A stretch of DNA of 64,000 nt from Klebsormidium nitens (GCA_000708835.1 DF237304.1:31005-95004); one strand, 5' to 3'. Positions 30,001 through 62,673 are shown, counted from the stretch's first letter. A program made the numbers and translations. Notes: a model not told the origin generated them from the sequence alone.

Positions 30001-33000
30001 ATGTAATCGTGCCACTTTGAAGAGCGGGTTGAAACGTTCTTCTCTCAACAACTTGGTGCAGTCCCTAAAAAATCGAGTCGAGTCGCCGGTCAAATCGGGC
30101 CTGCAAAGCCCCTCTTAGACCACAACATGCGACCGTCGACCACAGATTTGGTCGCATCACTACAACAGCGGCTCGAGAGGCCTCCTCAATAACTTGTTGC
30201 CATCCATTGCCATCCATTCGAGCTTCATTGAAACCGCCAAAGCGACAATCAAAAGAAAAGACCCACGGCCGGAAGTAGCCCATAAAACTAGCCTGATCTT
30301 TCTCATCCAAAAAAGGTGCACAGCCGACACCGAGAGGGCCTGCGACTGGCCGCTGCCTCACCGTGTCTGTGATGTATGGTTCCAACCGCTTCCCCAGCTC
30401 GACATACCGTGCAGCCTCCGCCGAAAGAATCTCCTCCGTATAGTTCAACCCAGGAAAGCGCGCCTTTGCGTCCTCGTACATAACCTGCCAGCGGTATGCG
30501 TAACCACGTCAGCACAAACAAATTGATACCTTTGTAACTGACGGTTAGCTTGATGTGAGCTAAAAATCGAAGAAAAAGACTCGGTAAAACCGAAAAGCCC
30601 TCTACAGGGAAAGGTGTACAACCGGCACGATGTCGAATCGTAGATACAACGGCATGCCAAAGGATATTTTGAACGCTGCAGTGCTTCACCTTGAATGGAA
30701 TCGGAACTTACAAACCTAGTCATGATAACAAACGGCTGTTGAGCCGAGCGACCTGCCAGAAATTCGGTCCCCCACTCATGTCTTCCAATGCTTGCTAACA
30801 TCGTTATGTAGCGTTTTCCTTTCCGTCTGGTCGGTTGCAGATCATCGTTTAACAAAGTAGCAAGACGGGCTTGGATAGGGAATCTGTACACCCCACAAAG
30901 GTTAGTCCTTCTCACGTCCCATCCAGCTGTTCCCCTTCGCTTCTTGTTCCTCTTCGTCATCCCTTCTTCTTGTCCGTCTTCTCCGGTGTTTGCAACCTCA
31001 TCTCTCATACATCCCGTGCACTCACCCTGAGCTTCTCTTTGAACGTCTCGGGCCGCCGCAGCTCCCCGACGCGAATCCCATTGCGCACGACTTTGCTCGC
31101 GTACGCGGGCCCGATGCCGCGCTTGGTCGTCCCAATCTTGCCGCCTGCCAACTCCTCCTCGCGCAGCCCGTCAATCTCGCGGTGCAGGTCGAACAGCAGG
31201 TGCGCCCTGCGAGAACGAAAAGCTGACGTCATCCTGGGAAGCTGATGTTATATATTTGTATCGAAGTAGCAATAGCAGAGGTGAAGAAAATCTCAAATAC
31301 GTTTCTGCTGAGTTGAGGTGTTCACTTGCTGACTGCCCAAGAAACTTCCACCTCGCGCGGTGCAGGTCGAAGAGCAGGTGCGCCCTGCATGGATGGAAAG
31401 CTGACTTTATCATTTGGTGATGCTGATGTCATCTCTACTTTTGACATAGTAGCAGGGGTAGCGGAACCTGCCGCACTGCCCCAAACTCGTCCACCTCGCG
31501 GTGCAGGTCGAAGAGCAGGTGCGCCCTACGGGACGAAAAGCTGACGTCATCGTTCGAAGCTGACATCAGCTGCTTGTTGAGTAGGAATGGAAGTGACGAA
31601 ATCTTGCCAACTTCTGACGACTTTTTGGGAGTTTACCTGTGGATCGCCCCGAGAAGCGTTTACCTCGCTGTGCAGGTCGAACAGCAGCAGGTGCGGCCCG
31701 CAGAAAAGAAATGCTGACGTCATGCCCCGTGAGGCTAGAATAGGAGAGACGACGGCCGCGTTTTTGTAGTGCTTACACACTTCCACTGCAATCTGTTGAA
31801 AGCCCCGAAAGCCCTGCGACGGCCAGAACAACATGGGCAAGCCTCTGGAGTGGACTAGGGCTGGCGCCAAGTACACTTACTTGAACTCCAATCCGGCATT
31901 AGGGACCTACAATGACATCTGATCTTCAAATCAAAACTCGAAAAAGATCTGGTCAAAACCGACCAAGACAAACGGCAGCGATCTGTCGCATAAAGACTGA
32001 GGTGCTGAAAATGGAATCCCAGATTCACCTGTCAGAGACCAGGACCCGCCCCTCGGTGTTGACGCCCTGCGACTGCAGCTTGTCCAGCTCGTCGAAGAAG
32101 CTCGGAAGGTGCACCACGACGCCGTTTCCAACCAGGCACGTGGCCTTCGGATTGAGCACCCCGGACGGCACGCCGTGCAGTGCAAACTTCTGGCCCTTCT
32201 CGTTGTAGATCGTGTGGCCCGCGTTGGCTCCACCCTGGAAGGAGCGAATGTTTCATCTCAATTGACATACCCAAAGCTGGTGGTAAGACAAGGTTGGAGA
32301 CAATGCGTCAGGCCCTTATTGCTGTGATTCGTGTGGCCTGCGTTGGAAAAAAAAAAAGATTTCGGTTTGAAAGCAGACACTTTGAAAAGAAGGAAGCACG
32401 TCGTTGTCAACTGGTTGAAGTAGCAGGGCAAGACAAATCTCGTCACTTTTGAGAACAATGTGGATTTTCAAGTCGGTGGATGCTTTGTCAAGTACAAAAG
32501 AGAAATTTGATCTCCCTCAACAATAGGTCTGGCAGTTGGTACAACGAAAGACTAACCCAACCGCCACGATTCAAAAAATTCAGACCGAGTTTCCCACGGG
32601 ACAAGGGCCCTATGGACAAACGAAGGATGCAATCAATATACATAAAGGTTAGAACGTCACAGAAGCACTAAGGTTAGTCCAGGACCCAATGATGCTCTCT
32701 AGAACTAGGTCCTTTTATGCAGAAACATATGCATTGGCTCAAAGTTCCCCTGCAATTGCATACCATTGGACAACATGCAATTGACTTTCATGGCTTGAAA
32801 GCGGGTAGGTGCCCCATAATCGGAATCGTGTAATTACATGCGAACTTGACTAACTCCTTCATGCCGGAAATCTTCTTTCCAAAGTCCGCTCTTGGCCCTC
32901 TTTCAAGGCAAACCACTGAAGTTGGAGTCATGCAGCAAGTACTACTCAGTCATTACAATCACAATCGAGCAGGAAAAAGCTAGTCAACGCAAGCCGTTGA

Positions 33001-43100: not shown

Positions 43101-43739
43101 GAAGAGTTCACTTTTAAAGTCACCTTTTGGAAGGAGTGATTACTGAGAGTACATCAGCGGTGTGTAGATACGTTGCAGAAGTCATCTATACATTTCAAGA
43201 CTCTGGAAGGACCAACATTAGCGTAGTGTGACAGGGCGCATCTTGTAAGCAGGGACACCGTGAACTTGACTTGCTCTAGTCTGCTGCTGGACTCTAAAAT
43301 GGGGTTGACTATGTGCACATTTCTCTTGATCTAACAGGAACTACTATGGCGCGCATAGCTGGCCTGACAAGAATGCCAGCTGGCGCTTTGCCGCTCCAAC
43401 ACCTGGAGGTGTGTCAACTCCCTGAAGCTATCCTCTACAATGCAAAGACTGACAAACTTTCTCATACAGCCCATGTATTGCAATCTGAGATTAGGATATG
43501 GGCTATAGGATATAGGATATAGGATATCGATTTTCCTTTGGATGCTTCTGGAGCTTTGCCTCCTGCCAATTGTTTTAGCAAGAGTGATCCCTTATGAGCT
43601 ACAGGATTTGGCAGCCAGATCAGTCTACAATGCCAGGTTTCTAACCTTACCTGTGATCACTCAAGTTCTTATCAAAGAAGCTCTGGTTCTTGTGCAGAAC
43701 CGCGCAGCAAGCCTTCCAGGCAGCTCTGCCGAGACCCAA

Positions 43740-46700
43740 ATGAACGTGTCACCTCTGCACCCTGGTTCAAGACTAGGCACGCGGACAGCTGGCATTTGCC
43801 CCCCCCGCACTCCATGCTTTTCAACATATGAGGGGCTCCGAGCACGTCCACTGAGCTCTTATGCCCCACAGTCCATAAGCTATGGGAAAAGAGGATTCAA
43901 GGTGGCTTCACCGCACGCAATGTACGCGGAAGGGGCGGCTACCAGACCTGGCCATGGAGCTGACATCAGCAGAGGTGAGACTGACATCAGCAGAGGTGAA
44001 GGCTCTGGTTCATCTCGTTCAAGGCTCAAGCCCCTGCGATGCTTCTGTTCCTGAATACATGAGCCCTTGTTTTCTAAAATTTGTGTTCCTTCACATTCAG
44101 TGCCATTGGTTGTGATGCCATAAGACAGGTTCAAAGTGCCGTCTCTTCTAGAAAGCCTCCAGATTTTTGACAGCTGTGCCTCCAGTGCAAGTCTAGGGCC
44201 TTCTTTCAGCGGGCGCTTGGGTGTGCCAGTCTGCTTCTCTTGTTCGAGCCTTCTCTGCTTCTCATCGTCAACTTGACCGCCCTCTTTCTTGCGCGGTCAC
44301 GTTGAAAGCATTGCGAAACTCTGAAAATTTTCCATCTTCAGTTTCTAAAATGAAACAGCTGTTGATTGGGGATACCTGATCAGACAGCGTCTATTGACGC
44401 TCACGGCCTAGGTTTGACGAATGCTTCATCTTTGTTTGAAAGGGGAAAAGTAGACTATATTCGGCACACCCTTTTCACCCTCCTACCTTCGACTTCGCGC
44501 AGACAATCTCGAGCAAGCCGCAGCGGCGAGCCTGCTCTTCCAACTGCAGAGAGACTCCGGCGTCCAAACCATTTCCGTTGGAGAGATGGACATCCATTCC
44601 GTATCGCGCGGCGAGGCCGGAATGCTCTCCACCCTCTCGGAAGAGACCGATCTCTGGTCCGCGGTCCACGTAGACACCGGTCTTCGCGCCGATGTTCACA
44701 GCTGTCCTGGATTGCTTAGCAAAGCCGAGAGGGAAAACGTCGCGGCAGTGATGGCCGAACACGGGGGAGCTCTGTACCGCCCGGAGCATATGCAGCGCGC
44801 GCTGGCCGCGGTGGGCGACCGCGTGTCGAGGCAAGAGGTGGGCTGGTCGCCCTTTTTACCTAACAGGGCTCAGAGTATAGCATTCTGTTCGAGGAATCAG
44901 GAGAAGCGTGTCCGAAGCCGACGCAGATGAGAAAGCCTTGTTGGAGGCCTGGTAATGCGCTGCGTGGCCAGGCAGAAGCGCCAAGTTACTAGTTGCTGTA
45001 CAGATGACGTTTCGAAATTTGGACGACTCCGTTTGACACCATCTTCGCACACAGTCAGTCGGATGCTGAATCTTTGGGTCTCATCTTCATGTCTTAGAGA
45101 GTCCACATGATCAAGAAAACATACTCACAAGGTCGTCATACACTTTCAGATTCTGGTCAGCTTTATTCCCTAAACCGCAGTCAGTTACAACAGAGTGCCG
45201 ACACAGCCGTCCAATCCGCGTTCGAAGCGGATCGAATCAGCCTAATCTGATTGCTTTTCAAATCGACTCTGTTCTTCCGTACAGGCTGAGAAGTTGCTGA
45301 TGGAAGCAGGCGGCTCCTTCTCCTCTGTGCTCGCCTTCGAGCGGATGCTGAATGACATCAACATTGCGGCGACAGCTGTCCAGACGTGCGTGCCGGAAAG
45401 CGCGAGCAACGTGCATATCCTGCGCCCGCATATGATGCGGAAGGAGTATAAGAGGGGCGAGATTCTGGCCCTTCAGGGTAAGGCGATTACGTCTGCCAGT
45501 CTCCAGAAAGAGAGAGCTGACCTGGCCGCACATAAACCTCGAACGGAGGGATGATCGTCGTCGAGGAAACCAAGACTATCTGGCTGTTGCTACAGTCTTG
45601 ATCTGGGAGTACTAGATCCTCAGGGTATCATTCTCTGTTCTTCCGAACAGTCAAGAACGCCCGCGTCCCCCTTAAGTCAGAGTCGTGCGTACAAGTGATC
45701 TCTTCGTTGTCGAAACCTCTATATGGGCGTTGAAAGTTGAAGACTGGGCGTTGCGAATCTTGAATGGTTCAATCACGCTCTGACAACACACGGGAGTTGG
45801 CATCAGTCTTTTCCTACGATTGTAGAGAAAATCCGCTTCCATCCTTTCTTTATCTCAGACTTGTCCTGTTTTCGCTGACGTGGCAGGTGACATCGAGGCC
45901 GAGTTCTTCGCCCTTACCGCGGGCTCGGTCCACGTCATCAAGGACGGGAAGATGGTGGGCGGGATGAGTGCCCCCGACTACTTCGGAGAGCTGGCGCTCC
46001 ATACGCAGGTGCCCCGGTCTGTCACCATCCAGGTGAGCTTTAGGAAGGGTTTGGCTGCTGACCAGGCTGATTAACCAGACTTAAGTTGTTCAATAAGCGG
46101 GCCGTAAGTATGTTGAAAAACTGGTTCAACTGCTCGATTCTGGTCAGGGGACTATAAGCAGCTTCTAACCAGCCCGTAGCCGTAGCCGGTTGTGTTTCAT
46201 CGTCAAAAAGCCATATTGACACGAGTCTTTGGTAGTTAGCCATGGACGGTTATGGGCCGATTATGAGCTAGTTAGAGATCGGTTACATGTCCGAAAACCA
46301 GTAGAATTGGGCGGTACCAGCCTTGGAACAAGGCTAAAGCCTGGTCCTTTGTAAGATAAGCAAAGTTTTAAGTTGGTTCGCATCGAAAATACCTACTAAG
46401 GTTCCGCGTCCAAAAAGAAAATGTTCAGAGCTCATCTGCGGTAGTCTGAAACGTTGAGAACGCCTCAATCCCATCCAGTCGGGGCTAGCCTTCCAAACCT
46501 GGGTTCACCATTTGTCGGGTCATCTTTTGAGCGGAGGAGAAAAGGAAAAGCGAGCGCTTTTGTTGGGTTCTTCGGAATCCTTTGGGACATTCATGGAGTC
46601 AGAGGTACTGTTAGCTGATGATGAAGTCTTCGTTTTCATACCTGGATGTGAGGCTGACGAACAGATTACTTTTGTCTGGTTGGTGCGAAACTCAAACGCT

Positions 46701-49700
46701 GTACAGCTCGAGCAGTCGAGCTCCCCTCCCGCTGACGTCAGACCCACGAAGTCCAACCACATCCCCTTGAACCCTAATACTCAAATACACCAGAGGTCAT
46801 TTCTTCCGCAGGCGGCCGATGACGTCACGGTTTACATTCTACGGGAGGCTGACTACGTCAGGCACATGAAGGAGGAGAACGCGGACAAGCGCGCCAAGTA
46901 CAGCGCTTTCCTGGCGTCCGTGCCTTTCCTGAGTGAGCCACGTGTCACACTTATATGGAACCGGGTCCACATTTATCCTCATATCGGATTTGAATAAATC
47001 TGTATACTCGCTTGTACTAGGAAAGCCTGGTCACCTTCTCAAAGGTTTAGTGCAGCCGATCTTTGATTCTGGGCTTAAACGCCCGATGCTTAGCGCATAT
47101 TCAAACGACAAGATGCGCCAAAGCTCGCAGTCAGAAAAGGGTTTGTCAATGCCTTTGCTCAAAGCTGGCATGGGTGCCACGTACGGCTCAAACTGTCAAA
47201 CAGACAAGGGAAAACATGCCACGACCGATTCTCGACGGAGTCAGTTTGCATTATAGAGAGAGCGGCCCAGATTTCGGCCAAAGCCGAGGCACTCGCTTTG
47301 CATCTGCTTCTAGTTCCGCCAGTAAAAAGACAGTCGAAGCATGAGAAGTATTCTGGCCCATCACGTAGAACGGTGTTCCTCACTCAATTCACTCCAAAAT
47401 GAAAACGTGCTTTCCAGTTCCGATCCCCGCCTTATGTGGCTTCGCAACTCTCTCTCTTGCACATGCAAATCCCAATCAGATCCAACCCAACCCCTGACCA
47501 AAGTAAACCCACTTCCGCAGAGGACGTGGAGCCTTACGGTCGCCAGAAGCTGTGCGATGCGCTGAAAGAGGAGCGCTTCGAAGACAACGAGATCATCATC
47601 CAGGAAGGCGAGGAGGGCTCTCGCATGTACATAGTCACGGAGGTGCGTGCGTCGCGAGCTGACGTCATCGTTCCGTCACGAGCTGCGTCAATTCTCCGTC
47701 CTTCAGCCCTGCTGCGAAGTCCCTGGGTCGGTTGGACCGAAAGTCGAGCTGCCAGACATTGGAGTGACTTCACGTCAGCACCTGAGCTGAGCGAAATCTT
47801 CATGCTCGAGCGCGCTGACGTCAGCGCTTTTGGTTTCGCAGGGGGAAGTCGTCACGGTGAGAATGCCCGACGGCAAGCAGCCGGTCCACGCCGCCGTGGT
47901 CAGAGTAGGTGAGTGAGTTCGCACAGCACGAGATATTGAAACCGGCCAGCTTATGTTTAACAGATTTGCAGAGCTCCCCGAAGCAGTCATAGTGAAGACA
48001 CATCTCTGCTGATGGCCTTGCCTCGTCGTTCGCTGTTTTGACAAGGACTGTCTGGATTTCTGCAATCCCTTGGCAGGTAGCGTGGCTTTGACTAAAATTG
48101 CCTTCCTTGTCTGCTCTTGTGGGTGCTTTTTCGAAACGCGGAAGCATGAAGCAAATCGTACGCTACAAAACCTGTTGTTTCTCTTGTCCACTATTAAGTT
48201 GTCTTCTTCGCCCTTCACATACGAATGTGACTGTCGCTGTTGCGGGATACAGACCAAAAGTCGACCGTTCAATTTTCGGCAATTTGTAAAGCCAGACTTT
48301 GAGTTGCCAACTTATTCAAAAGAGCGCTCCCTCATCAGAAACGACGCGCAATCTGACCTTCCCGCTTACAAATGGGCCATGGGTCGTTTTGTTAGAGTCG
48401 CTCGTTTAAACAAGACCAATCCCTTAGTGTAATCTGCTTGTAAATCTGTCTTTCCGTTCCCTTACGCAGGCGGCTTTTTCGGGGAGCGCTCCCTGATCAA
48501 GAGCGAGCGCCGTGATTCGACGGCGATCTGCCACGGCCCCGTCGAGTGCGTGTCGCTGGACCGCACGTCGTTCCTGCGGCTGCTGCAGAGCCAGGCGACG
48601 TCCAGCATCGTACAACACATCGTGCGCGGCTACCGGACGGCCGCGGACGCCAACCAGGTCAGACGGAGCGTCCGAAAATCGACGAGAAGCCCCAGTATTT
48701 CGAATCCTCACTGTCCGAGCCCTTCGCATGATGCTTTTCTTGATTTTTCCAGACTGGGCGTCTGAATGAAGCACCAATTGTGGCATGCCGATGGTCGCAG
48801 ACGCCAACCATGTGAGGCGGAAGGTTCATAACACTAAGCTCTATGCAGTACATGTTTGACACCCATCATTTAGGAAGCAGACGCCCTAAATCCTTGAAAG
48901 GGTTCCGTGTCCTAGGTTCCGACTGGACACCTGAGGCAGCGAACATCGCAAGCGGACTGCTGCGGACGCGCGCTAGCAGTAAATGCCAGACGTCCCAGGT
49001 TTTTTGATAAGCTTGAAACTTCTTCCGCACTTCCACATCATCGTGCGCAATCACCAGGAGGCGGCCGACGTGAACTGGAACGTCCGAATGTCTCCAAACT
49101 TGTCGAGGTGGCGACGCCGATACTTGAGTGTGGAAAAGCCTCTTCTGTTGCCTTCGGAAGTCTCATTGACCAGGGTCACGCAGACGGATCTTGCGTCACA
49201 ACTGCGTATGTCACCCAGAATTCAAATGGAAGGACTGATGATTCAGGAGTGAGTGAGAGCGAGTGCGCATCGTCACATGTCCGGATTGCGGAATGAAACG
49301 TGTGTTTCCCCCGATTTTATTTTAGCTGACACCGTAGTGCTTAAGAAAGGTTCTCAAGAAGAGACCTCAGGAGATGAAAATCATCGGCGGGTCCAGAAGC
49401 TAAGCGCTGACGCCAACTATAGGTTAAATCCAAAAGTGGGTCAGCTTTAACCAATTTTTCTGTCATCCCGACAGGTGGCCACGCTGGGCGCCCTGGTGTC
49501 GCTCCAGCTCATCGACTCGGCCGCATTTGAGGACGAGGCATACGCTATGGACGTGGTCGAGGGGCACGTGCCCATGGACCTGGACGGCGTCCTGTACAGA
49601 AACGTGAGGGCCCGCCGTTTCGCTGACGCAAACGGGGGTGTGGCCCCGGTAAAAACGTCTGCGAAGAGAAAGACGGCAGCAGCACGTTACGGATATGGGC

Positions 49701-52700
49701 TCAAAAACGTCATCTTTCAAATCATTCCTGATTCTTGTGACATTTCTGGCTTGGGCAATGCATAAGAATACCCTGACAGCCCAAGATGGGGATTCCCTTG
49801 CAGGAAGTATGGGTGACGATCTCTTAGCAGGCGCTGCGTCGAGCTTTCATGACAAACGGTTCAAGGGCAAATGAACGTGACATACTCATATTCGCTTTCC
49901 GGAATGTCCTTTGAGTTTCGCAAATCCCGAAAAGGGCACAGATTGTTTCAGACCTGGCAAATCTCAAAGTCTCAAACCGCCTGCAGGGCCCCGCCGCATT
50001 GGAGGGAGTCGGCGGGTGGCGACTGAACAACTCAGTCGACGGTGACGGCTGTGTCGCCGCCTTCTCCTTCTCCGGGGGGAAGGTCCACCTGACAAAGAAA
50101 ATTGTACGCACGGCGGCTTTCGAGCGGGAAAAGGCGACCAGGAAATCTAGCTGCAGGGGGGCCTTTGGCACGCTGAAAAGTGGGGGGTATCTTGCGAACC
50201 TCCTGGATCTGCGCGTGAAGAACCCGGCAAATGTGAGCTTTACAAAAAAAGGAAGTTCTGAGCGTTGACACGTATATTCTGCGCTGATCAAAATGGTGCA
50301 AGTCGGAGGAACCACGGGAAGAAATGCTCCCAATGCCTAAGTAGGTGAGGATTACTCCTCTTGGAGACTCCTGTTTCCAGCCGCGTTCGCTTCTCAGATC
50401 CTTTCCAACACGTCTCCAAGATTACATTGGAACAAGATGCCAGCCTGTGACTTGACAAGTTGTGTACACATGTTTCTCCTTCTGTACGGATTCCCCCAAT
50501 TATCTTGGAAGCACTGGGAATCTCTCGTTCATATTTCTTTCGAAACTCTCTTGATTACCCTAAACTTCCTGAAGTTTCTGAAACCCTCGTGGAGGACTCA
50601 CTCAACACCCCTCACTAGTGTCTGGTCCCTAAACCCCTCTGATTATCTCGACCTTCTCGAACTCTTAAACCCTCCAAAACGCGCTTGGAGCCTTCCTTTC
50701 ATCTCTGTTTTCCAGACCCTCTTATCTCTGACCTTCTCAAACCCCTTCGTAACCCCTTCTCTGGACCTCCTTTTATTTTTTCACATTCTAAGACCCCCTC
50801 TTAACCCTCTTCTCCATAGCCCCCAACCCTCTGAACCCTCTGAACGTTTCCACCCTCTTAAAACTTCTGAATTCTCTTAACCCTGCTCTTCAGACCAACG
50901 TGGTTTACTGGGGCGGCAAGCTGCTCGCCCTCTGGGAGGCTGGTCTTCCCCACGAGCTGGATCCCGACACTTTGGAAACGCGAGGAATGACCGACTTGGG
51001 GGGTGCGCTAACCAGCCTGCTTTACCCGGTGTTCAAGTGGTTGGACCCCCCCTTCCAGCCCGCATTCGCCGCTCATCCTCGGATCGACCCGGTGAAGAAA
51101 CGGTGAGTTGAACGAAATCAGGTTAGCGGGACCTGAAGCCCAGATACTTAGTTGAGAAGATTTCGAAATTTGGAACATTGGAGAGCCTTGAGATTTCCGG
51201 TTCACTTGTTACGTGGGCTGTCAGCGAACACGCGCTTTTCAAGTAATCAACAGGGCTTTGTATTGTTCAAAACACTTTCCTAAGCTCTTCGATATTTGAG
51301 GTTGTCTGGCCTGTAAGTACTCCGTTGCACTTTGATTGTGTCAGCTTTGGTTTGACCTACGAAGGGCTCATATTTAGTGATGCCGTCTCTGTGGAGTCAT
51401 TCGGTGGGCTTAAGATGTTGCACGTGTACTGCTTCTAGATGATCAGGCGAGAGTCCTCGCGGCGCCGCAAGGGGCTTTCAAAGACAAGTTCCATGCTAAG
51501 CGACGGTTACATTGTGGAGAATGGTTGTTAGAACCTGAGAAAATCCACCAAGCTCGTCTATGGCAGTTTAAGCTATACACTGAAGCTCCTCTTGATGAAG
51601 TCTTCTGGCACTCTCGTCGTCGCCTCTTCTTGTGATCGATGGACGAGAAAGCGCATCCGACAAGATTCCATTCTACTTGTAGTCACATAATTTAAATCGT
51701 GAATCGCCCTCGCTTCGCTTGATCAGATGCTGACGTCAGCCGTCCTCTTTCGCTCGCAACAGATTCGTCAGCTTCAGCGCCACGACCTTCCCATACGCTA
51801 TCAACAACACGATGCGGCTGACGTGCTACGAGTGGGACGAGGACTGGAACCTGGTGTTCACGCGCGCTGTGTGGGCCCCATTCACACTGATGCACGACTT
51901 TTGCATCACGCCCAACTACTACGTATTCCTGTACACACCAGGAAACATGGACCTCCTCAGGTGAGTAAAAACCACGTCATCGAATCAGAAAAAACCTGGA
52001 AACTTATAATTTTGTGTCTCTGATCTGATCGCTCTCGAAGGATCGGTTTCAGGGTTTCAAAAGGGCTTCACTTGTTGGAAGAGCGAGGCAGCAGGTAAGG
52101 CTTTGAAAACTCAGAACTCTGTGTGAGGAAGCGTACTGTGAAAGTTCAAGACGTAGTCGTTCAGGTCTTCATCGTTTCTGAATGGTCTTTCAGGTCTTGA
52201 GTGCTCCGGCCTCGAGCTTTGCGGTCCTTTTGATTTCTCCTTGCTCGGAGGTGCTGTTACTACGTGTTTCACTCACCTCGAACTACAAAACCTGAACTGC
52301 TTTTTCACTTTGCGCTTTTGGGGTTTGTCAACCGCTTTATCAGGCCTTTTCTCTACATATGTAGCACACCCTGCGTTCAACCATTACGTCGAATCCTCCT
52401 CCTCTTGCAGAATGCAGATCTGTGTCGTTATGAACCTTTTGCCTGCACATGATGATCATCAAGTGCCGCCGAATCGAGTATCTCAGCGCGGACCCTTCGT
52501 TGATGCACAGACCCGCTGCCATGTTGTCCTTGAGGCCAAAGCTTTCAGCCCTTCAAGCTGACCGACTTTTTCGACAGACTAAAGTAATCCGCTAGTGTCA
52601 GCTTACGTTACGATTCAAATTACACTGCAAAGGATCCTCCGCAATCGAAACAGCGTCGCCCAAGCAACTGAAGAACTTCAACCCCCACTGTTCACAAACT

Positions 52701-55144
52701 TCTCAGCTCCCAAAAACTATCAATCCTTCTGGACCAGGTTCATTCTGAAGCCCAAGGGGGGAGTCGCGGGGGCCATCCACTTCAGCAACACTGAACCGGG
52801 GCAGATTCTCCTCATCTCCCGACACGATCCGACCGCACCCGTCCAGATTTTCAAGACCCCCCCGGTGTCGTCGCTTCACCACGCAAATGCCTTTGAAGAC
52901 GGCAACGGAGGAATCGTTTTGGACACCCTGAAATACACTGTGAGGCTCTCTCTTCTCGCCCTGTCTGTTTCATCGGAGACCTTTTTGCATCCCCAAGTCG
53001 GGGGCAGAGAAGCAGAGAAGCAGACCTGAAAAGCAGACCCACGAACTGATTTGACGGGATTTAAGATCGTGCATTTGCAGTATCTGGTGAGAAGCCCAGG
53101 TCGAGCGAAGAATCGAAAGCTTGCTCACCACAATCTGGTCTATCTGGTAGTGTCGGCTTTGTGCGGAAGTGGACGAGGCTTCGTACGTTCGAACAAACCT
53201 GGAGCACTGGGGCGGCATTCACTTCGCTAACGGCGATTCAGTTTCAATAAGACTTCAAGGATCAAAGCTCAATCAAAAGTCAATCTCCAAGTTACTTAGA
53301 ATACGTTCTGGTCATAATGTTGGAACTGGAAAAGGTGGGGTTTCTAAGGGGGTTTAGGGTGGACATAGCTGTAGAGCAGGTGATATGTCGGGTTAAGTTT
53401 TTTGAGTGTCAGGTTCGTTCTGAGTATAACCTGAACTCATCAAAAGAATTCTTAAGAATTCTCGTTTGAAATCTTCCTCTCTTCGCAGCGAGTCCCCATG
53501 TCGTACATGAAGAGCGCCGCGGAGCGCGGTGCGTACCCGCCGCTGGACTTCCTTCCGGCGTCGAACCTGGTGCGGCTGCGGCTCGACTTGGCCACGGGGC
53601 AGACGACCATCGAAACGATCGACGAGCGCAACGGCGAGTTCGCCGCGGTGCACCCGGACAAGGTCGGCAGCAGCGCGCGCTACATCTACACCGCGTCGTG
53701 CCAGGTGGGATATTAAATTTACTTTCTGGCTTGAAACCGACAAATTGTTTCAGGAAACTCCCAAACTTCGCTTTGTCCATCTCGAGCTCGCAGACCTCCC
53801 CCATCCGTTTCAGGTACGGGCGCCTTCAACCTTATCGCTCGTATGTTAGCGTGCGTTTGAGATTCATAGATTCGAGCATCGTGCATCGGCAGTCTCTTAC
53901 CTTGAGTTCTGCAGTTCTCGTCAGCCGCACTCCTGATTGTCATCCAATGCTGTTGACGCTGGCACGTTTGGCGATCACTGTTTTTGGGTTGGCAACCTGA
54001 GTGTCGCTTCATTTCTCCAATTTCAAGTGTTCGATTGTCCCCTTCTGGGAACGATCTTTCAACTCGCTCGCTCAGAGTCTTTCCGCTTTTCCGAAAACTC
54101 CCCTTCCCTTTTCGTTTTCCATGGTTTTCTTATTGTCCAAACCCAAACAGGTTCCGGAAGGGGGGGCTCTCTTCGACGCGCTCCGCAAGGTCGACACCAG
54201 CGGCTCGACCGCCCCGCAAGTGTGGGCGGAGTGGCCGACCGTCTACGTGGGCGAGCCCATCTTCGTGCCACGTGGCGGCCAGAGAAGCGACGATATCCTT
54301 CCGGAAGACGCGGGCTGGGTGCTGGTGCTGCTGTACGACACGGACCTGCTGATGACGGAGCTGGCCATCTTTGACGCCGAGGTGAGGACCAGTCTGCGTT
54401 GTGGAGTGCGGGGAAGAATTGTGTCAAGGGCGAGCTCACGTAGCTTTCAGTCTATGGTTCATCATTACACGGTGACGAATCGCTTTCGCGTGGTCGTTTG
54501 TCCTGTTCGGAAATTTGCCGATTTTTCAATTTGACGAAGTACAGTACACTTCCATGTTCGCTCGGCTAGAGACATTGGCGAACCGACTTCTCTCTGCAGA
54601 AGCAAGCGTTCTTACACTGCGAAGAGAGGCAGAGAGCGACGCGTTACGACCTGAGTGCTCGCCTTCAAAGCCCACTGAATTGCATCTCGTCAAGAGCAGA
54701 ACCACCCACCTAACCTAGCAAAAGTCTCCCTGGATTAGATGGCTCCTAATCGTACGATCAGACCTGATACAATTTGAGGGCGATCTCAAAACGAGAGAGT
54801 CTTTGCCGTAAAGGCAGGCTCTGCATCCATTAGTAAAAGCCCGGTCCGCAATAGCGGCTACCCCGGTACATTCACGACGGATCTTATCGAAAGCTCCTCA
54901 ATCTGGAGCTTTCGATGCATCCGCTGCATCGGCATGATCAAGCAGGTTTTCCCCCGGGAGCTGACGTCAAGCTGGAAATTCTGTTGTAAGCGATGACGTG
55001 TGGCTGACGTCATAGCCTTTGCGCGGTGCGCAGGATATCACGAAGGGCCCGGTCGCCCTGCTCCGGTGCCGGCACAACATGGCGTATGGGCTTCACGGCA
55101 CCTGGGCTCCCCGAGCTAACCTGGACCGCGGTCGGAGGAAGTAA
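43740..55144 (+). CDS. Predicted fusion protein: transit peptide + tandem cyclic-nucleotide-binding domains + carotenoid cleavage oxygenase (about 982 aa)
   Basis: join(43740..43974,44503..44837,45285..45477,45887..46032,46812..46932,47521..47642,47842..47908,48470..48657,49475..49603,49987..50232,50894..51102,51763..51960,52738..52939,53489..53704,54151..54381,55034..55144). All introns are GT-AG, phases match, total 2949 nt with a single terminal stop. The join 48657/49475 is phase 0-0. Confidence 0.75.
45285..48657 (+). other. Tandem CNB (cNMP-binding, PKA-R/PKG-like) module of the gene above
   Basis: CNB-A: KEYKRGEILALQGDIEAEFFALTAGSVHVIKDGKMVGGMSAPDYFGELALHTQVPRSVTI. CNB-B: ERFEDNEIIIQEGEEGSRMYIVTEGEV...FFGERSLIKSERRDSTAICHGPVECVSLDRTSFLRLL. 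Both phosphate-binding cassettes keep G-E and R. Confidence 0.92.
49475..55144 (+). other. Carotenoid cleavage oxygenase module (RPE65 family; cyanobacterial apocarotenoid oxygenase-like)
   Basis: VEGHVPMDLDGVLYRNGP, DGDG, KNPANTNVVYWGGKLLALWEAGLPHELDPDTLET, AHPRIDP, LMHDF, LHHANAFE, NGEF, VGEPIFVP, EDAGWVL, YGLHGTW. All four Fe-binding His and the three second-sphere Glu are present. Confidence 0.95.
50560..50893 (+). repeat. Low-complexity C/T-rich intron segment with many aaccct/aacccc words
   Basis: taaacccct, taaaccct, aaacccct, taacccct, taaccct, caaccct, gaaccct recur ahead of the acceptor at 50893. Confidence 0.6.
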
Positions 55145-58100
55145 CCGGGTGACGTAAGCAAGGGACACGTGGGCTGACTACATCTGCATGGGCTCAATCA
55201 GCATAGGTCGCGCAGTCGATCCAAGGGGATCACGTTGGTTACACATCTGGTCCAGAACAGTTTACTTGGTTCCCGGTTGGGTCTTTGTCGAATACGTTTC
55301 TAGTCAATGAGATGGAAGTTCCACGATTAGGGTGAAGTTTGTCAGTATGCCATGGTGACTTTTGAAGCAGATATTAGAAGCTCAGAGGCTGGTGGAGAGA
55401 GCAGGAAAGGCAGTTTCGAACCGTTCGCTCGTACACGCATCCCTTCGTTCGTACCACGTAGTACATGTTTATTAGCGATTTATGCAGCCAGGTTCTAAGG
55501 GCTTCGATCGGTTGACCTACTTGACATTGCAACTGAGCCCAATTTGCCTTCGAGACACAGCTGGTAGCATGCAGCGCCCGCGCACATGGACGTATCTGGG
55601 GTTAAGCTACCGTATAATGTCTGGTTACTGAGGTGCTAGCTCGCGTCTGTACGTACTTAACCATTTTAGGACTTGAAGCATTAGCCATCGACAGCTACTC
55701 AGTAGCTAGCCGCGCTGCAACAGCTGCTCTTCTAGATTCGGTCGCGCCGAGGTTAGGCTTGTACAGGATTCAATTAAGAACACGTGTCAGTTAGTGCTTG
55801 TTTGCTAGCCAGTCCATATAGATTCTGGTCTGTCAGTTTTTATGGCGAAGACAAAAAGTCAGTCGATCACAATCGTGAGCTTCTCCGGTGATATCACCGG
55901 GCTTTTCAAAATGTGAACATCTGTGCCGTTTGGATGCGACTAGCTTTGAGTCTAGCTTGCGTAGACGTATGTCTTGAACAAGTGTGGGGGTTACGCTTTT
56001 TAATTAATACCGCGTCTACCTCTCAGTTTGGCAGAAAATGGAGAACCATGATCAAAGTGACGGTTCAAAAAACATTGAATAATCACTGATTGTAGAACAA
56101 TTGTTGAGGACGACGACTAGCTGTTAGAGCTGTCGCTCAGATTGCAACACATGCATGCATGTTCTCTATCCATGTTTAGAGCGGCGTGATCTCATGCGCT
56201 CCAGAACTATAGTAGCTTGTGCTGTATAATTCGCCCCGGACCCGGGAATATGTTTGAAGTACCAGGTTGACATACATGTATGAGCCCGAAACTCCGCGGG
56301 GGACGCGGTGTAACAGACATAATCCTCCTAAAAGTAAGTTTGCACATACACAAAATACCCGCCCGGAGCTCGATCATGCAGGTGATCTCAAGTTTGAGCT
56401 GAAGGGAACAGTATGCACTGAACAGTAAAGAAGCACGAAACCAGAAGCAATCCTTAGACGGACTTCGATCCCCGGCCAAGGTCGAGATGATACACTCGTA
56501 GACTTAACTACCCCGAGATTTTGACTTACGCTACCACCAATCTAAGAATTCAAGCACGCGCGAGGCCTCCGAAATCGACATACTGAAAGAAGTTCCTTTT
56601 TTTTTCCTAACTTGCTCAGTCTAAATGTCTGAACCACCTCGAGAGCTCGAAGAGACAGGTAGCTGGCCTTTACGGAAGCGGCGAAAATTTGTTTTTAGCA
56701 GTGAGCATCATCAGGCAGTCCCGCATGGTCGGCCGTAACTTTGCCACCGTATGAACACAAAGCAGACCAATCTGCGTCGGAGAAAGGCGGGATCAGCCAT
56801 CAGCCCACGAAATTTGACGTGACAATGTCATCCGTTGGCGGAGTTTGCGGAACTTAGCTCCCGCCAACTTTGACAACGCATCGGCCAGAAAGTGCGATAG
56901 CGGAGGTGGATGGAGTGACGAGTCATCTTTTGAAAGCCGAAACTTGACCAGGAGAACTTATGAAGACCCCGCCAACCGGTTCCGTTCCGGATTCCGCCCG
57001 CGCAGAGCGGCATGCCTTCCACAGACCGCTGCTGTGGCTGTCCCTTACGGATCGAACCAAAGAAACTGAGAATTTGACAGCCACGTTTCAAGGGGCGTAC
57101 CTGCGGTGATTTTGGCACATATCCGGGTTCGCCACGCCGAAGTCAACGCGCGACTGGCTTGCCATGACGTTAACTGAGGAGCGGTGAGGACGTACGAAGA
57201 TGTTCGCGGGACGTGCGGCAACCCGGTGGCTGACGGGAACGAGACGGGTGCGGGGACGACACGCGCTTTGGGCGGTTGCTCGAGGCGCGACGACGTGACG
57301 GAGAAAACGCTGCACATGGGAAATTGAAGGTCAGCCTCAACAAGCTATGTCAAAGAAGGACTCTGAACGTTGTGCCCTGAGAAACGATTCGTGACAAGTG
57401 TTGAAGGTTGGTGCACGGGACTGAGCCGCACTTGGAGGGAGCGGCAACTTAACCTGGTATTTGTGGAACGAAGCAAACGGACTGCATTTCAAACAGAAGG
57501 AAACACTATCGCAGCGCGAGATAGCAACGTACAAGCCTCCAGACCAGGTCACAAGCCTATGCGACATTCTGACACGAGGATGTTCAGAGAATCTAGTTCT
57601 CCTCGCAAGCGCAACCGAGAGGACAAGGTACATCGGCACATGGTTATCACGATCGGAGTCAGCGCAAAACAGATGGTACATGACATTTGCAGAGCATTTT
57701 AGTTCTGGCTGGGATGGTAGGGGTGCAACCGGTGACCAAAAAATTACAGGGCGTAACGCTAAGTATGCCGCCTCCTCTTGCAAGCGAGTCCAAGCAAAAC
57801 GCCAGAGAATTGGGCGACATTGGTGCAGCCAGTCTCTAGATCGATCAGTAACGTTCGTGTCGCAAGACGGATCCGTGACACAAGGCATGCGCTTCCAATG
57901 AGATTCAAGAGGGCACCTGTACGGCCGCTTACCCCAGCGGAACAAGGAAAGAACGTCGATGATGCAGTTCCGCTCATCTAAAGGAGCAGCCCCCCTGATC
58001 CCTGTCCCGCTCTATCCAGCCGGCGGAGCGTGCGGCCAACCGCCGCTCTCGTCCGATTCGCGCCAAAACTCGCACGCTCGTTACTGAGACGGACAGCTGT

Positions 58101-60342
58101 GCACTGACGTCACCCGGGCCTTGCTAACGTCAGCACCGGGAGCCGGCTGGGGGGTCCGTCGGACGGGAGAAGTGGAGGACGTGGCACGGCCCGAATTGCG
58201 GTCCGCGCCCACGCTGCAGGAGCACGGGTGACGTCAACATGGGCCGTGATGACGTCAGCGCTAAGGCCCGCGAATCATGAAGCAACTTGAAGTTGAATGA
58301 CGAAGCGTCAGAGAGCACGGTGTCCTCAGAGGGGAATCAGAGAATAGACAAATGGTTGCATACACAATACCTTCCGCTACAGCAGACCACGGGATGAAAC
58401 GGAATACAAGCGACACCGGTGAGACAGAAATGTCAATCTGATGGGCCGGTATTGCTGGACCTTCGACGAGACGCGCATACGAGAAGTGCTTTCTAGCAAC
58501 CACGTAAAGCGCTAGCGGGTACACCAGCTCTTAATTGTGCAACCGGAGAAGGAGGGTTGACAAGACTCCAGTCGAGGATGATTTGAAGCGTCTCCGATGG
58601 CTTCACTCAAGTCTTACTCACGCTTTTGCTATGAAAGGCGATGCAAAGACCCTACCCTCCACCCAGAGGGAGCCCCAAAAATGCTGCAGATTGAGAATTC
58701 TAAGAGAAGAACATCAGGCAGCATATTGTCCAGAGCATCGGAGCGTTTTAAATGGTTCAGACCGCAAAAAAGATTCTTTCAAGGTAGACAACCCATCCAT
58801 CAGGAAAAGCGTGTCGAGTCTTGCACTGAACACGGTGACTGTCCCGTTCCTCCTATTGTTTCACCGGCTTCGATCTTGACAGCAGTCACCACTTCCCCTT
58901 GAAAAGACCAGAACGGCCGCTTACAAGCTTTCCCAGGCGCCCAGATCCTTGCTGTCCGCATACGATCTTTTCAGCGACGACTACCGCAATGTTAACGGCT
59001 CCTTAGCTCTTCTGCGACCAACTTCTATAAGATTCGGGAAAAGTTCAGGAAGCACGTCTCGGCTCACCACACTCACTGGCTCGTTCGGAGCATCGGCCCC
59101 GCTCAAGGTGGTAGCACCAAAACGGCGCCTTCGCAGCGAGCCGCGCGTTGACTTGCGTGCTACACGCCAGCGGCGATCCTGAATAAATATCATACTCTTA
59201 ATCAGCGGGGACGACTCTGGAATGCTACGAAAGACGGATTTGCTGCCTTATGCGTAGGATCAAGACAGAGTCACCTTACAGGCAGTAAGGGAACAGCCTT
59301 TTTAGAACAAGTCCAACAGTTGCCAGAAGCCGTACTCTTGAGTATCTTTACTGTGCAATCTCGTTCGGCAGCTTAATGCGGACGCAAAGCTTCGCAAGAC
59401 CCGTTGTAGGTCTTCAGGATCCATTGTCAAGCAAAAGCCCGACGATAAAAGTCTGACGTCATTCAAAACAAAGGTGCGTCTTTCTTCCGCGTATCTCTTC
59501 ACGACTAAAGGGATCGAGACAGCATCCTTTCAGGATCCTTCACACAAACGTTCTCAGCATCAGGCGAATTCTTAGTCAGCACGCTTCGACATGGTACTCC
59601 TGAAACTCACCCTGCTTCAATCCGCACTCTCACAAGGAGCCTCGGCGCACGCTCGCTCCGCTGGCCTACTAGTTGCGCTTACACTGCCGGGTCGGGCGAC
59701 CGGAAATAAAGTCCTCGTTGGGGCCCACCCTGCAACGAGCATGCGAATCCTTAGACAGCCCCAGCACTCTGACCTAAGCGTGAAGCGGGAGCTTGGAACA
59801 TAGCACATGACTATCTTCCAGAGCGTGGTAATTCGGGAGCCAGTATACAAACTAAACTCGTCTACCCAAGAGATCAGCTTAATCAGGTACGAGATACTTG
59901 AAGCACAGCAAGGCTCTGCTATTCGCCAAAGGGACCGAGGAGGAGGAGAAGCAATCGTCAGATACATCAGAGGAACCATCAAAAGCCTTGCGCATAAGAT
60001 GATCAATAAGGCAGTCAAAAAGGACAAGCATCCCTATGCTGAACCAGCAATAAAGCAGGACAGTTTCTTGAATGGATCCAACTTCGTACAGGACGTCATC
60101 ACAGCGGAGAGCAGAACGAAATCAGAGTCTTGAGAGGAAGATAGCGACGTGTCTGAGAGAGGAAGTTTAATTCGCTCAGATCGCTGACCCTTATGAACGT
60201 ACAACTTACGAAAGAACGTGTGACGTTTGATGAGATGCCTGATCTCGCTCTTTGCTTCGCCAAGCATTCCACCTTCGAACTTGTTCGTCACGTCACTCAC
60301 CGCAACTGTTTCAATGTACTCCTGCTAGGGCCACAACTCAGG

Positions 60343-62673
60343 CTACTGCTCCGGCTCCGCCGCTTCGCCCGCTTTCCAGCCGCCGCTAGTTTCTTCCGGC
60401 CTGCCACCTTCCAACGCTCCCGCTTCTCCTGGCTCCACACCCAAAAGGCACAGGATCTGCGCTGCCAGTTCCCGTAGCTCACTTGGGTTTGGTTCGTAGT
60501 CGGGCCATTGCAATGTGCAGTACCTCTCCAGCTTCTGAATGCTCCCAGGCACTGCAGCAATCGCTCGTGCAGTCTCGCTGTCTGCCGCCAGGTTCTTCAA
60601 AGCTTTCAATGCCTCATCCTTCCCCATATTTGATACATCTACCATCCTTACGAGTCCCGCTAAAGCCCCTGGCATGGCCGCTATGGTTTTCCCGATCGCC
60701 ATGTCCTCCGCCAGAACGGCGAGCACAGATGCCTGTAACAGCGGTGACGCCAACTTGTTTACCATGGCACCAAGTCTCTCGAGACACCCCGGGACGGCAG
60801 CGACCGTTTTACTGTTTGCCGGCTTTGCCACCAGGTTCAGTAGAATGCGGGTTGTTGACTCCAGCAGATACCTGTAGTCCTTATCCGAGGCAAGAATTTC
60901 GACAAGCCGTCGCATAACGCCGGGTGTCTCCAAGGTCGCCCTCTGCACGCTGACCTCTTCTGTCAATGTGCCCAAAAGTACCGTGCTCCAGTACATGTGC
61001 TCAGCGCGTTCAGCCACCACGCTTTCTGAGGTCCCCAGAAGAGCAAACAGCGACTCCAGACACCTGGGCATGCTGGCAATGACTTTCACCTTTGCAGCAT
61101 CTGCAGCAAGGATGTTCAGTATCTTGACAGCTTGCACTTGTGCGCTGACACTCGCACAGGCCAGTAATCCTACCAATTCCGCTTGAATCCCCGGCACTTC
61201 CCACACCTTGTCGACATACTCCGGGCTAGCCCCAAGGAACCACAGTATCTCTCCAGCCGCTCGGTGAGCGTGCGAGCTTGGACTGTGCAAGAGACTGAGC
61301 AGCTTTTGTAGGCACCCCGGCAAAGCGACTACACAGGCTTGGAACCTACACCCCAACTCCATCAAAGCCACTGTTACAGGCTCAAGCGCCTCGTCAGGTA
61401 TTCCTGCATCCATAAGTCCAACCAGCTTCTCCAGAAGACCATGCACTTCTGGGATCGCCTCGCAAAGTTCGTCATCGCATACCACCTTCTCAAGGACGCA
61501 GGCAGCCAGTTCACGCATGGGCCCGCACCCAAGAAGATCGATGATCCGCTGCAGGCAACCCGGCACGTTCGCTATGACGGTTCGCGCCTCAAACTCCGCC
61601 GCTAAGCTCTGCACAGCCCCCAGGACATCGCCATTCACCGCTTCCAAAGGTGCGTTGGTCAAAAGCTCTGCCAAGTGCCGCACTATGCCAGGCGTCTGAA
61701 CTATCAGTCTGCACGCGTCGTCATCGGATGCTAGATACCACAGGATTCCAGGCACATTCGTCTGGGGGTCTGCGTTTGGGGTTTGCAGGAGGGCCCCAAG
61801 GCGCTGTAAACACCCTGGCGCCTGCGCAATGGCCACCCTGCTCCCAGCGTTGCTTGCCAGAGCCAGCAGCACCCTGACCGCCTTTTCTCTAACATCTACG
61901 CTGCGGCTATCCAGCAATGCGACAACTTTCTCCAGGCTCCTTGGAACGCCGATCCTTGATGGATTCTCAGTATCAATCCCCGCTGCTTCATTGCCCCACC
62001 AGAACACTTTCTTCAGGGAACCTGACCTCAGGGTGTACGTTGCCCCCGTCAAACAGTTCAGCTCCAGGCTTGTCAAGGACGGAAACCGCTCGATGAACGC
62101 ATCAAATCTAAGAGGGGAAACTGCAAACCCTTGCAGCGTCAAGGTACGCAACTGAGCAAAAGGCTTTGGCAGCCAATCATTGCACAAGAGCCTTTGAAAA
62201 ACCTGCGGTTCTCTTGTCCAGTAGAGAACCTCCAGAGTTGCCAGCTCTTTGCATGCCTGGAACATCAGGAGCATGTACTCAAAATCGATGATGCTTGCTG
62301 CTCCGGCCCCTCCCATAAACAAGTGAATCTCCTCAAGCGAGTCCTGTGCCTGGAGAATGATGGACTGCAGGATAGCTGCTAGATTCACCGGATGCTCCAC
62401 AACCAAAGCCACTTTTGTCAAGAGGGAAGCGCACTTTCTCTGCTGGAGCATGTACCGCAGGAAAGCTGATTCGTCTTCAGACTGGTTGAAATCCCAGTCC
62501 AGACACCCAGCATTGTGCACTAGTTCCTGGAATCGCTTGCAGACTGCCTCTAGCCGCAGCCTTTGGAGGGCCTTGGGCTCGGTGAAGGTGTTCGGATTCC
62601 ACAGCAGCTTCTCAAAGATCTGCCCAACCAAGTCATCGCTCAAGCGCTCAAAACAGTTCCTGTGAGCTTCCAT
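60343..62673 (-). CDS. Intronless F-box-like / LRR-like / Armadillo-repeat protein (776 aa)
   Basis: Single ORF. N-terminal F-box-like CFERLSDDLVGQIFEKL...LEAVCKRFQELV, LRR-like LRTLTLQGF/FPSLTSLELNCL, then many ARM repeats (PGCLQRLGALL, PGIVRHLAELL, PGCLQKLLSLL, PGVMRRLVEIL, PGALAGLVRMV). Confidence 0.9.
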   Translation of the reverse strand: MEAHRNCFERLSDDLVGQIFEKLLWNPNTFTEPKALQRLRLEAVCKRFQELVHNAGCLDWDFNQSEDESAFLRYMLQQRKCASLLTKVALVVEHPVNLAAILQSIILQAQDSLEEIHLFMGGAGAASIIDFEYMLLMFQACKELATLEVLYWTREPQVFQRLLCNDWLPKPFAQLRTLTLQGFAVSPLRFDAFIERFPSLTSLELNCLTGATYTLRSGSLKKVFWWGNEAAGIDTENPSRIGVPRSLEKVVALLDSRSVDVREKAVRVLLALASNAGSRVAIAQAPGCLQRLGALLQTPNADPQTNVPGILWYLASDDDACRLIVQTPGIVRHLAELLTNAPLEAVNGDVLGAVQSLAAEFEARTVIANVPGCLQRIIDLLGCGPMRELAACVLEKVVCDDELCEAIPEVHGLLEKLVGLMDAGIPDEALEPVTVALMELGCRFQACVVALPGCLQKLLSLLHSPSSHAHRAAGEILWFLGASPEYVDKVWEVPGIQAELVGLLACASVSAQVQAVKILNILAADAAKVKVIASMPRCLESLFALLGTSESVVAERAEHMYWSTVLLGTLTEEVSVQRATLETPGVMRRLVEILASDKDYRYLLESTTRILLNLVAKPANSKTVAAVPGCLERLGAMVNKLASPLLQASVLAVLAEDMAIGKTIAAMPGALAGLVRMVDVSNMGKDEALKALKNLAADSETARAIAAVPGSIQKLERYCTLQWPDYEPNPSELRELAAQILCLLGVEPGEAGALEGGRPEETSGGWKAGEAAEPEQ

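Follow-up and report, generated by a model that had tools for sequence, protein, structure and literature searches.

Within a 64,000-nt stretch of Klebsormidium nitens DNA (GCA_000708835.1, DF237304.1:31005-95004; hereafter the window, whose first letter is position 1), the locus at 43740-55144 on the plus strand is one real gene, which fuses two cyclic-nucleotide-binding (CNB) domains to a complete carotenoid-type oxygenase. No fewer than two other genomes share the fusion, and all of its parts are under purifying selection. Its product is a member of the carotenoid cleavage oxygenase (CCD) superfamily with a tandem sensor resembling that of the regulatory subunit of protein kinase A (PKA-R), and it combines known modules in a domain architecture that is new. 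The original prediction, made from the window alone, had proposed such a cyclic-nucleotide-gated oxygenase, and we consider it fairly probable that the best explanation of the locus is indeed one fused gene, in which a CNB tandem joined to an oxygenase of the apocarotenoid-15,15'-oxygenase (ACO) type would let a cyclic nucleotide switch apocarotenoid output.

Carotenoid cleavage oxygenases make retinal, the precursors of abscisic acid and strigolactones, and other signals. To our knowledge, CCDs have been described as single-domain enzymes that are controlled mainly via expression and substrate supply, and we know of no CCD with any nucleotide-sensing domain. The targets of cyclic nucleotides in plants and algae, beyond channels, are a long-standing open question.

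Gene structure and the fusion junction

The gene model, built from visible splice sites after reading 43500-56500, has 16 exons and 15 introns, all of the latter with GT-AG ends. The joined exons form a 2949-nt open reading frame (ORF) with zero internal stops, closed by a TAA at 55142-55144, and encode 982 residues (approximately 105 kDa), arranged in the order of an acid-poor leader, a PKA-regulatory-type tandem of CNB-A and CNB-B, a linker of 30-40 residues, and a full RPE65/CCD oxygenase. The sensor and the enzyme meet at intron 8 (48658-49474, plus strand), the GT-AG fusion intron, where exon 8 ends in ...YRTAADANQ|GT at 48657 and exon 9 opens with AG|VATLGALVSLQ at 49475. The predicted in-frame joint is confirmed, with a gap of 817 nt, phase 0 and no stop. 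It had also been claimed that the oxygenase begins at an acceptor with no start codon of its own, and in agreement with this no in-frame ATG lies upstream in exon 9, the first in-frame Met being residue 494, inside the conserved oxygenase N-terminus.

Spliced transcripts span the junction

RNA-derived contigs of four public runs from the same organism were aligned to 46000-51990. Two contigs cross the fusion junction, one of 369 nt from run X1 that joins exons 7-8-9 with 133 nt on the shorter side of the junction, and one of 1096 nt from run X2 that covers exons 5-9 plus approximately 500 nt further upstream, with 92 nt on the shorter side. Both splice 48657 to 49475 exactly and in frame, removing 817 nt with GT..AG ends, and thereby supply the junction-spanning RNA by which the prediction was to be judged. 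All junctions from exon 4 to exon 12 are seen in the RNA contigs (including the joints 46032 to 46812, 46932 to 47521, 47642 to 47842, and 47908 to 48470), and a loose contig end at 51962 continues into exon 13. Since introns are removed precisely, the contigs derive from spliced RNA. At the 5' end of the gene, a fraction of about 0.31 of the words of 43450-44100, approximately the size of exon 1, is present in RNA contigs of several runs belonging to several studies.

Separately, X5, a run of another study, yielded a 244-nt contig of depth 2.2 at 49043-49286, inside intron 8, and has nothing on the exons compared. This contig, which lies in a stretch that is not conserved in the close relative L004 described below, may derive from pre-mRNA, from carried-over DNA or from a small transcript unrelated to the gene.

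The fusion in other genomes and selection on its parts

When exon 10 was searched with phmmer against 1.84 billion representative proteins, no near-identical protein was found, i.e. the window's own protein is not among these representatives. The search did recover a 77-residue fragment (P0008) with 77% identity, whose source is a 99-kb contig of JGI metagenome 3300060284. A 20-kb portion of that contig, L001, carries the whole fusion gene on one strand as an uninterrupted ORF of 1008 residues, in which exon 1 has diverged and exon 2 is shorter. Exons 3-13 and 15 of L001 have lengths and phases identical to those of the window and exon 14 is 3 nt longer, all splice sites being AG/GT, and its fusion junction reads ...YRTAADANQ|gt ... 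ag|VYTLGALVSLQ across an intron of 457 nt. A search with exon 11 brought in two further contigs, L003, which is short, close to L001 and limited to exons 10-11, and L004, an 11-kb Logan contig from a close relative whose exons share approximately 90% nucleotide identity with those of the window. L004 begins in the last 19 codons of exon 8, keeps the fusion junction, and has a syntenic downstream gene. Identity is 80% for exon 5 and 86% for exon 9 against L001, and 100% for exon 9 against L004. The interior of the fusion intron gives no blastn match between the window and L004. The prediction that orthologous fusions should exist in other genomes is therefore borne out by the whole gene in L001 and by the junction in L004.

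Selection was gauged from Nei-Gojobori estimates on a MAFFT alignment of the window protein and L001, between which dS is approximately 1.1 overall. The ratio dN/dS is 0.144 in CNB-A (72% amino acid identity), 0.152 in CNB-B (73%), 0.178 in the linker at residues 451-490 (82%), and 0.125 in the oxygenase (77%), compared with 0.38 in the pre-CNB segment at residues 148-235 (55%). Low dN/dS in all three parts means that selection has maintained sensor, linker and enzyme alike across a deep divergence. Identity in the linker exceeds that in either CNB domain, which would be more in keeping with a structured coupling element than with a loose tether.

The cyclic-nucleotide-binding module

Pfam and PDB comparisons, here and below, were run on exon pieces rather than on the whole spliced protein. 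CNB-A starts in exon 3 (45285-45477), which also encodes conserved pre-CNB helices; its beta-barrel is in exon 4 (45887-46032), with the phosphate-binding cassette FGELALHTQVPRSVT at 45982-46026, and its end is in exon 5 (46812-46932), which continues as the B/C helix into CNB-B (KRAKYSAFLASVPFL). CNB-B starts in exon 6 (47521-47642), has the middle part of its barrel in exon 7 (47842-47908), and is completed by exon 8 (48470-48657), which holds the cassette FGERSLIKSERRDSTA at 48478-48525 and the C-terminal lid helix with Tyr461 (48631-48633). All of these exons are on the plus strand. Matches to the Pfam family cNMP_binding (PF00027) fall at profile positions 19-66 for exon 4 (E 1.4e-4), 2-25 for exon 6 and 50-88 for exon 8, amounting to two passes through the domain, and exon 8 alone tops the gathering score (28.6 bits against a cut-off of 27.5).

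PDB matches (E down to 1e-9) relate these exons to the CNB domains of PKA-R and PKG. The best PDB matches of exon 4 are apicomplexan PKG and PKA-R CNB domains, that of exon 6 is the start of CNB-B in PKA regulatory subunits (e.g. 5KBF, E 2e-8), and that of exon 8 is CNB-B of PKA RI-alpha (E 2e-7). The passage from A to B in PKA-R is matched by exons 5-6, and the C-terminal end of CNB-B by exon 8. The Gly-Glu and Arg of the cassette are present in both domains, as Glu289 and Arg298 (46015-46017) in CNB-A and as Glu412 and Arg421 (48511-48513) in CNB-B, and the Glu and Arg of both are conserved in L001. In addition, a Tyr in exon 6 aligns with RI-alpha Trp260 and Tyr461 with RI-alpha Tyr371 (the latter by ungapped extension), the two positions at which RI-alpha caps the nucleotide bound in its sites A and B.

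The residue that follows the cassette Arg is Ser in the window and Ala in L001 for CNB-A (RSVT and RAVT), and Asp and Ala, respectively, for CNB-B (RDST and RAAS). Because this residue is not a conserved Thr, as it is in cGMP-selective domains, there is a slight indication that cAMP may be a more likely ligand than cGMP. Exons 1-3 contain no Pfam docking/dimerisation domain at E<=1, and no inhibitor site of the RRxS/A type was seen in the translation upstream of CNB-A. For this reason we do not file the protein as a PKA regulatory subunit, but as one that carries a PKA-R-like sensor module.

The oxygenase half

Exon 9 (49475-49603) encodes the conserved linker (VATLGALVSLQLIDSAAFEDE) and the first oxygenase strand, and the RPE65/CCD oxygenase continues on the plus strand through exons 10 (49987-50232), 11 (50894-51102), 12 (51763-51960), 13 (52738-52939), 14 (53489-53704), 15 (54151-54381) and 16 (55034-55144), the last ending in the stop. 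Over exons 9-16 the RPE65 profile (PF03055) is matched collinearly from position 6 to position 469 of 469, with positions 6-32 in exon 9 and 40-469 in exons 10-16, and six of the eight pieces score above or close to the 27-bit cut-off by themselves. In an alignment of the window protein, L001 and 19 reference CCDs, with numbering mapped to ACO via P0003, the iron ligands His655, His708, His777 and His967 correspond to ACO His183, His238, His304 and His484, and the second-shell Glu609, Glu847 and Glu904 to ACO Glu150, Glu370 and Glu426; these four His and three Glu are conserved in all sequences of the alignment. The two diagnostic features that had been read from the window, the Gly-Glu...Arg cassettes and the four-His, three-Glu centre, are thus both intact and under purifying selection.

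The closest solved structure is Synechocystis ACO (PDB 2BIW), which was the best PDB match for each piece tested; for exon 11, for example, it scores best (E 4e-11), with fungal CAO1 and lignostilbene dioxygenase behind it. Among full-length relatives, ACO-type proteins of cyanobacteria rank highest, and over approximately 490 residues the oxygenase is 38-40% identical to cyanobacterial proteins annotated as all-trans-8'-apo-beta-carotenal 15,15'-oxygenase, a level of identity at which substrate specificity is not transferable. An insertion (LLYPVFKWLDPPF) ahead of the first iron His is absent from ACO-like sequences. ACO enzymes cleave apo-carotenals at C15-C15' to retinal, the best-known algal apocarotenoid, and the Chlamydomonas eyespot proteome contains ACO homologues (ACO-like CCDs), few algal CCDs having been studied (PMC5133782).

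The leader and the pre-CNB region

Exon 1 (43740-43974, plus strand) provides the start codon and a 78-residue leader that is rich in Ser, Ala, Arg and Pro and contains 3 acidic and 10 basic residues. The leader of L001, of 163 residues and unrelated sequence, has 4 acidic and 22 basic residues; both leaders are rich in Ser, Thr, Ala and Gly, and Ser, Thr, Ala and Arg abound at the N-terminus of both proteins, although residues 1-147 are not conserved against L001 (30% identity). This composition would suit an organelle presequence or transit peptide, and a plastid location is the one we presume; no separate leader precedes the oxygenase half. Exon 2 (44503-44837, plus strand) contains a variable stretch and then the conserved pre-CNB segment (residues 148-190). 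Its match to L001 is confined to the C-terminal 43 residues, and its length is 335 nt, compared with 155 nt in L001, while exon 3 is 53% identical at the same length and phase. No Pfam family is matched by exons 1-3 at E<=1.

Upstream of the main start and out of frame with it lies a small ORF (within 43594-43647), with an ATG at 43594, an in-frame second ATG at 43630 and a TAA stop at 43642-43644. Whether it falls within the 5' untranslated region depends on where transcription starts.

Relation to known systems

The protein shares with Synechocystis ACO/Diox1 (2BIW) and the cyanobacterial ACO-type CCDs a full-length RPE65/CCD domain with four iron His and three second-shell Glu. It differs from them in that ACO, like all of the best 120 profile matches, is a single-domain protein of approximately 500 residues, whereas the window protein adds approximately 470 N-terminal residues comprising two CNBs and a conserved linker helix, as well as the insertion before the first His. 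With PKA-R (of RI-alpha type, and apicomplexan) and PKG it has in common the tandem CNB-A/CNB-B joined by a B/C helix (KRxxYxxFLxxVPxL...), the Gly-Glu and Arg in both cassettes, and aromatics at the W260 and Y371 capping positions. In contrast to these proteins it has no detected docking/dimerisation domain or inhibitor site, and its CNB module is joined to an oxygenase, where theirs binds the catalytic subunit of a kinase or shares a chain with a kinase domain. CNB modules are also fused N-terminally to other non-kinase enzymes, in the mycobacterial cAMP-regulated lysine acetyltransferase, in which cAMP relieves autoinhibition, and in the neuropathy target esterase/PNPLA6 family. These resemble the window protein in placing a CNB module N-terminal to a metabolic enzyme within one chain; here, however, the partner is a non-haem iron oxygenase, the tandem is PKA-R-like, and the host is a eukaryotic alga.

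None of 18 exon 10 phmmer matches scanned with Pfam has a CNB domain. The best 120 profile matches, obtained with a long CCD and exon pieces as queries and reaching proteins of 430-1370 residues, include no fused protein and are dominated by single-domain cyanobacterial ACOs. An exon 8 profile run against a database of 5.8 billion proteins matched an L001-type fragment only, and exon-sized searches gave only contigs of this fusion family itself. A metagenome DNA scan with exon 8 had a sole match, L002, which we rejected as a 24-residue chance match with no other similarity. The CNB-CCD fusion is therefore absent from the database matches examined, in searches that cover eukaryotic proteomes in part, and the literature searched for CNB together with CCD or RPE65 contained no description of such an architecture, in keeping with the original prediction, which knew of none.

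A proposed switch and its alternatives

The fusion suggests control by cAMP or cGMP over the making of a retinal-like signal molecule. In the mechanism we propose, binding of cAMP would, as in PKA-R, pull the Tyr461-bearing lid helix of CNB-B across the ligand. Nine residues past Tyr461 the chain enters the conserved linker, followed by the first propeller strand, and since the lid helix runs almost directly into these elements its movement could switch the oxygenase; closure of the lid might shift the sensor against the enzyme and so open or block the substrate tunnel or the membrane-docking face. The product would be an apocarotenoid aldehyde whose supply tracks the second messenger, with retinal as the leading candidate because of the kinship to ACO. 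From the sequence we infer gating of catalysis by the nucleotide, a carotenoid or apocarotenoid substrate, and a plastid location. The more specific proposal of a second-messenger-gated chromophore synthase, in which cAMP or cGMP would directly turn on the production of retinal or a related apocarotenoid, we regard as rather unlikely.

Several observations count against a single, nucleotide-switched protein. Both junction-spanning contigs come from a single study (P1); word depth is 12-16 on contigs of the CCD half and 7-10 on those of the CNB half, a difference of approximately 1.5-fold; and the contigs of all three runs concerned break between exons 9 and 10 (49583-49990), although the joint between these exons is nonetheless seen, with 19-21 nt on one side. 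The break and the higher depth of the CCD half may reflect plain 3' bias, or else an alternative form or a retained intron 9 (a branch in the assembly graph). Just one CNB exon piece attains the Pfam gathering score by itself, because each CNB domain is split over three exons. Finally, if the leader is a plastid transit peptide, the cyclic nucleotide would need to be active within the plastid, a mode of action that is not established. The uneven depth would also fit a locus that mainly yields two proteins, one with the CNBs that terminates within intron 8 and a CCD translated from an internal start, with the spliced fusion as a minor read-through; Met494 could in principle start a near-complete oxygenase, and the X5 contig lies inside the intron concerned. 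We nevertheless judge this highly improbable, given that the phase-0, in-frame junction is conserved in three genomes, that the linker is the best-conserved non-catalytic segment, and that assembly in two runs gave the spliced form. Moreover, the interior of intron 8 is not conserved in L004 and so offers no hint that an internal promoter or exon has been kept, reading on from exon 8 meets a stop after 35 codons, the 817 nt of the intron contain no TGTAA signal, and the oxygenase has no leader to replace the one at the head of the fusion.

Loss of ligand sensing is a different matter, in that the fusion would be real but the CNB tandem would serve dimerisation, scaffolding, localisation or another ligand, leaving the oxygenase constitutive. 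The differences between species in the residues beside the cassette Arg fit such a reading, as do the doubtful supply of cyclic nucleotide to a protein that may enter the plastid and the fact that a module with no PKA-type docking domain or pseudosubstrate site found is already outside its ancestral context. We hold it to be improbable all the same, since the Gly-Glu and Arg of both cassettes and both capping aromatics have been kept over a dS of approximately 1.1 at a dN/dS of approximately 0.15, and these are the nucleotide contacts of PKA-R, which a purely structural role would not need. It is also conceivable, though in our estimate quite improbable, that the enzyme half, even if nucleotide-regulated, acts on another alkene (a stilbenoid or another lipid) or as an isomerase, so that its product would be no apocarotenoid: the CCD superfamily includes lignostilbene dioxygenases and isomerases, which are among the PDB matches, identity to ACO-type enzymes is modest, and the insertion before the first His sets the protein apart from ACO-like sequences. 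On the other side, every piece tested clearly matches ACO better than any other solved structure, and ACO-type enzymes of cyanobacteria are the nearest full-length relatives. A fused gene whose CNB tandem would switch an ACO-type oxygenase is the reading that we prefer.

Exon-edge copies, a recurrent palindrome and neighbouring genes

The original prediction had noted degenerate echoes of the CNB donor junction in the fusion intron, and had added that other introns of the window behave likewise. The first part stands: within 48618-49420 the 37 nt that end exon 8 have three copies (65-70% identity) and a 16-nt donor stretch has two (88%), and a 16-mer echo of equal quality arose in 12 of 300 shuffles of the sequence. 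The second part holds for intron 1 only, whose donor has an exact 19-nt tandem copy (43960-43999); the other 13 introns have no donor copy at <=4 mismatches in 16, and donor echoes as a general trait of this gene's introns are ruled out. The echo at 49405 in intron 8 overlaps a CTGAC branch-point-like motif.

In all three genomes (the window, L001 and L004), introns contain decayed copies of the edges of adjoining exons. The end of exon 8 is copied in the fusion intron of L004 over 29 nt (86%; 33-190) and in that of L001 over 20 nt (80%), and intron 7 of L001 contains a 68-nt copy (84%) of the start of exon 8, the L001 copies lying within 7717-7944 and 8033-8234. Several of these copies retain an AG|GT-like site, and tandem duplication and cryptic donors are candidate origins.

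The palindrome TGACGTCA occurs 21 times in the 64 kb, against approximately 1 occurrence expected from length alone, at 953-1250, 29105, 31224-31715, 37088, 46733, 46820, 47660, 47816, 51731, 54962, 55005, 58105-58250 and 59454. The cluster at 953-1250 resembles a tandem array, and in the fusion gene the palindrome is mostly intronic, as gCTGACGTCA. In 5 of the 15 introns the motif CTGAC is found 12-33 nt ahead of the acceptor, and part of the TGACGTCA signal is therefore probably a branch-point motif.

Downstream of the fusion gene and on the opposite strand, an intronless ORF at 60343-62673 encodes 776 residues with armadillo-like repeats; it is syntenic in L004 (9638-10999), with 72% nucleotide identity. 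In L001, approximately 3 kb downstream of the orthologous gene, a 508-residue ORF on the minus strand (18073-19599) has a weak match to the reverse transcriptase family RVT_1.

Implications for cyclic-nucleotide and apocarotenoid signaling

A conserved and expressed protein that joins a PKA-R-type sensor to an ACO-type oxygenase is a concrete candidate for a cyclic-nucleotide effector in plants and algae, and the fusion suggests fast, post-translational control of the production of retinal or other apocarotenoids. If it is true that a second messenger gates a chromophore synthase here, the result would be a feedback loop that links the sensing of light or chemicals to the supply of rhodopsin chromophore or apocarotenoid hormone. 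Carotenoid metabolism would then have in this protein its first direct cyclic-nucleotide effector, which would also be a non-kinase, non-channel effector in the green lineage. Should the switch work, the module could further be used as a nucleotide-controlled source of retinal alongside optogenetic tools.

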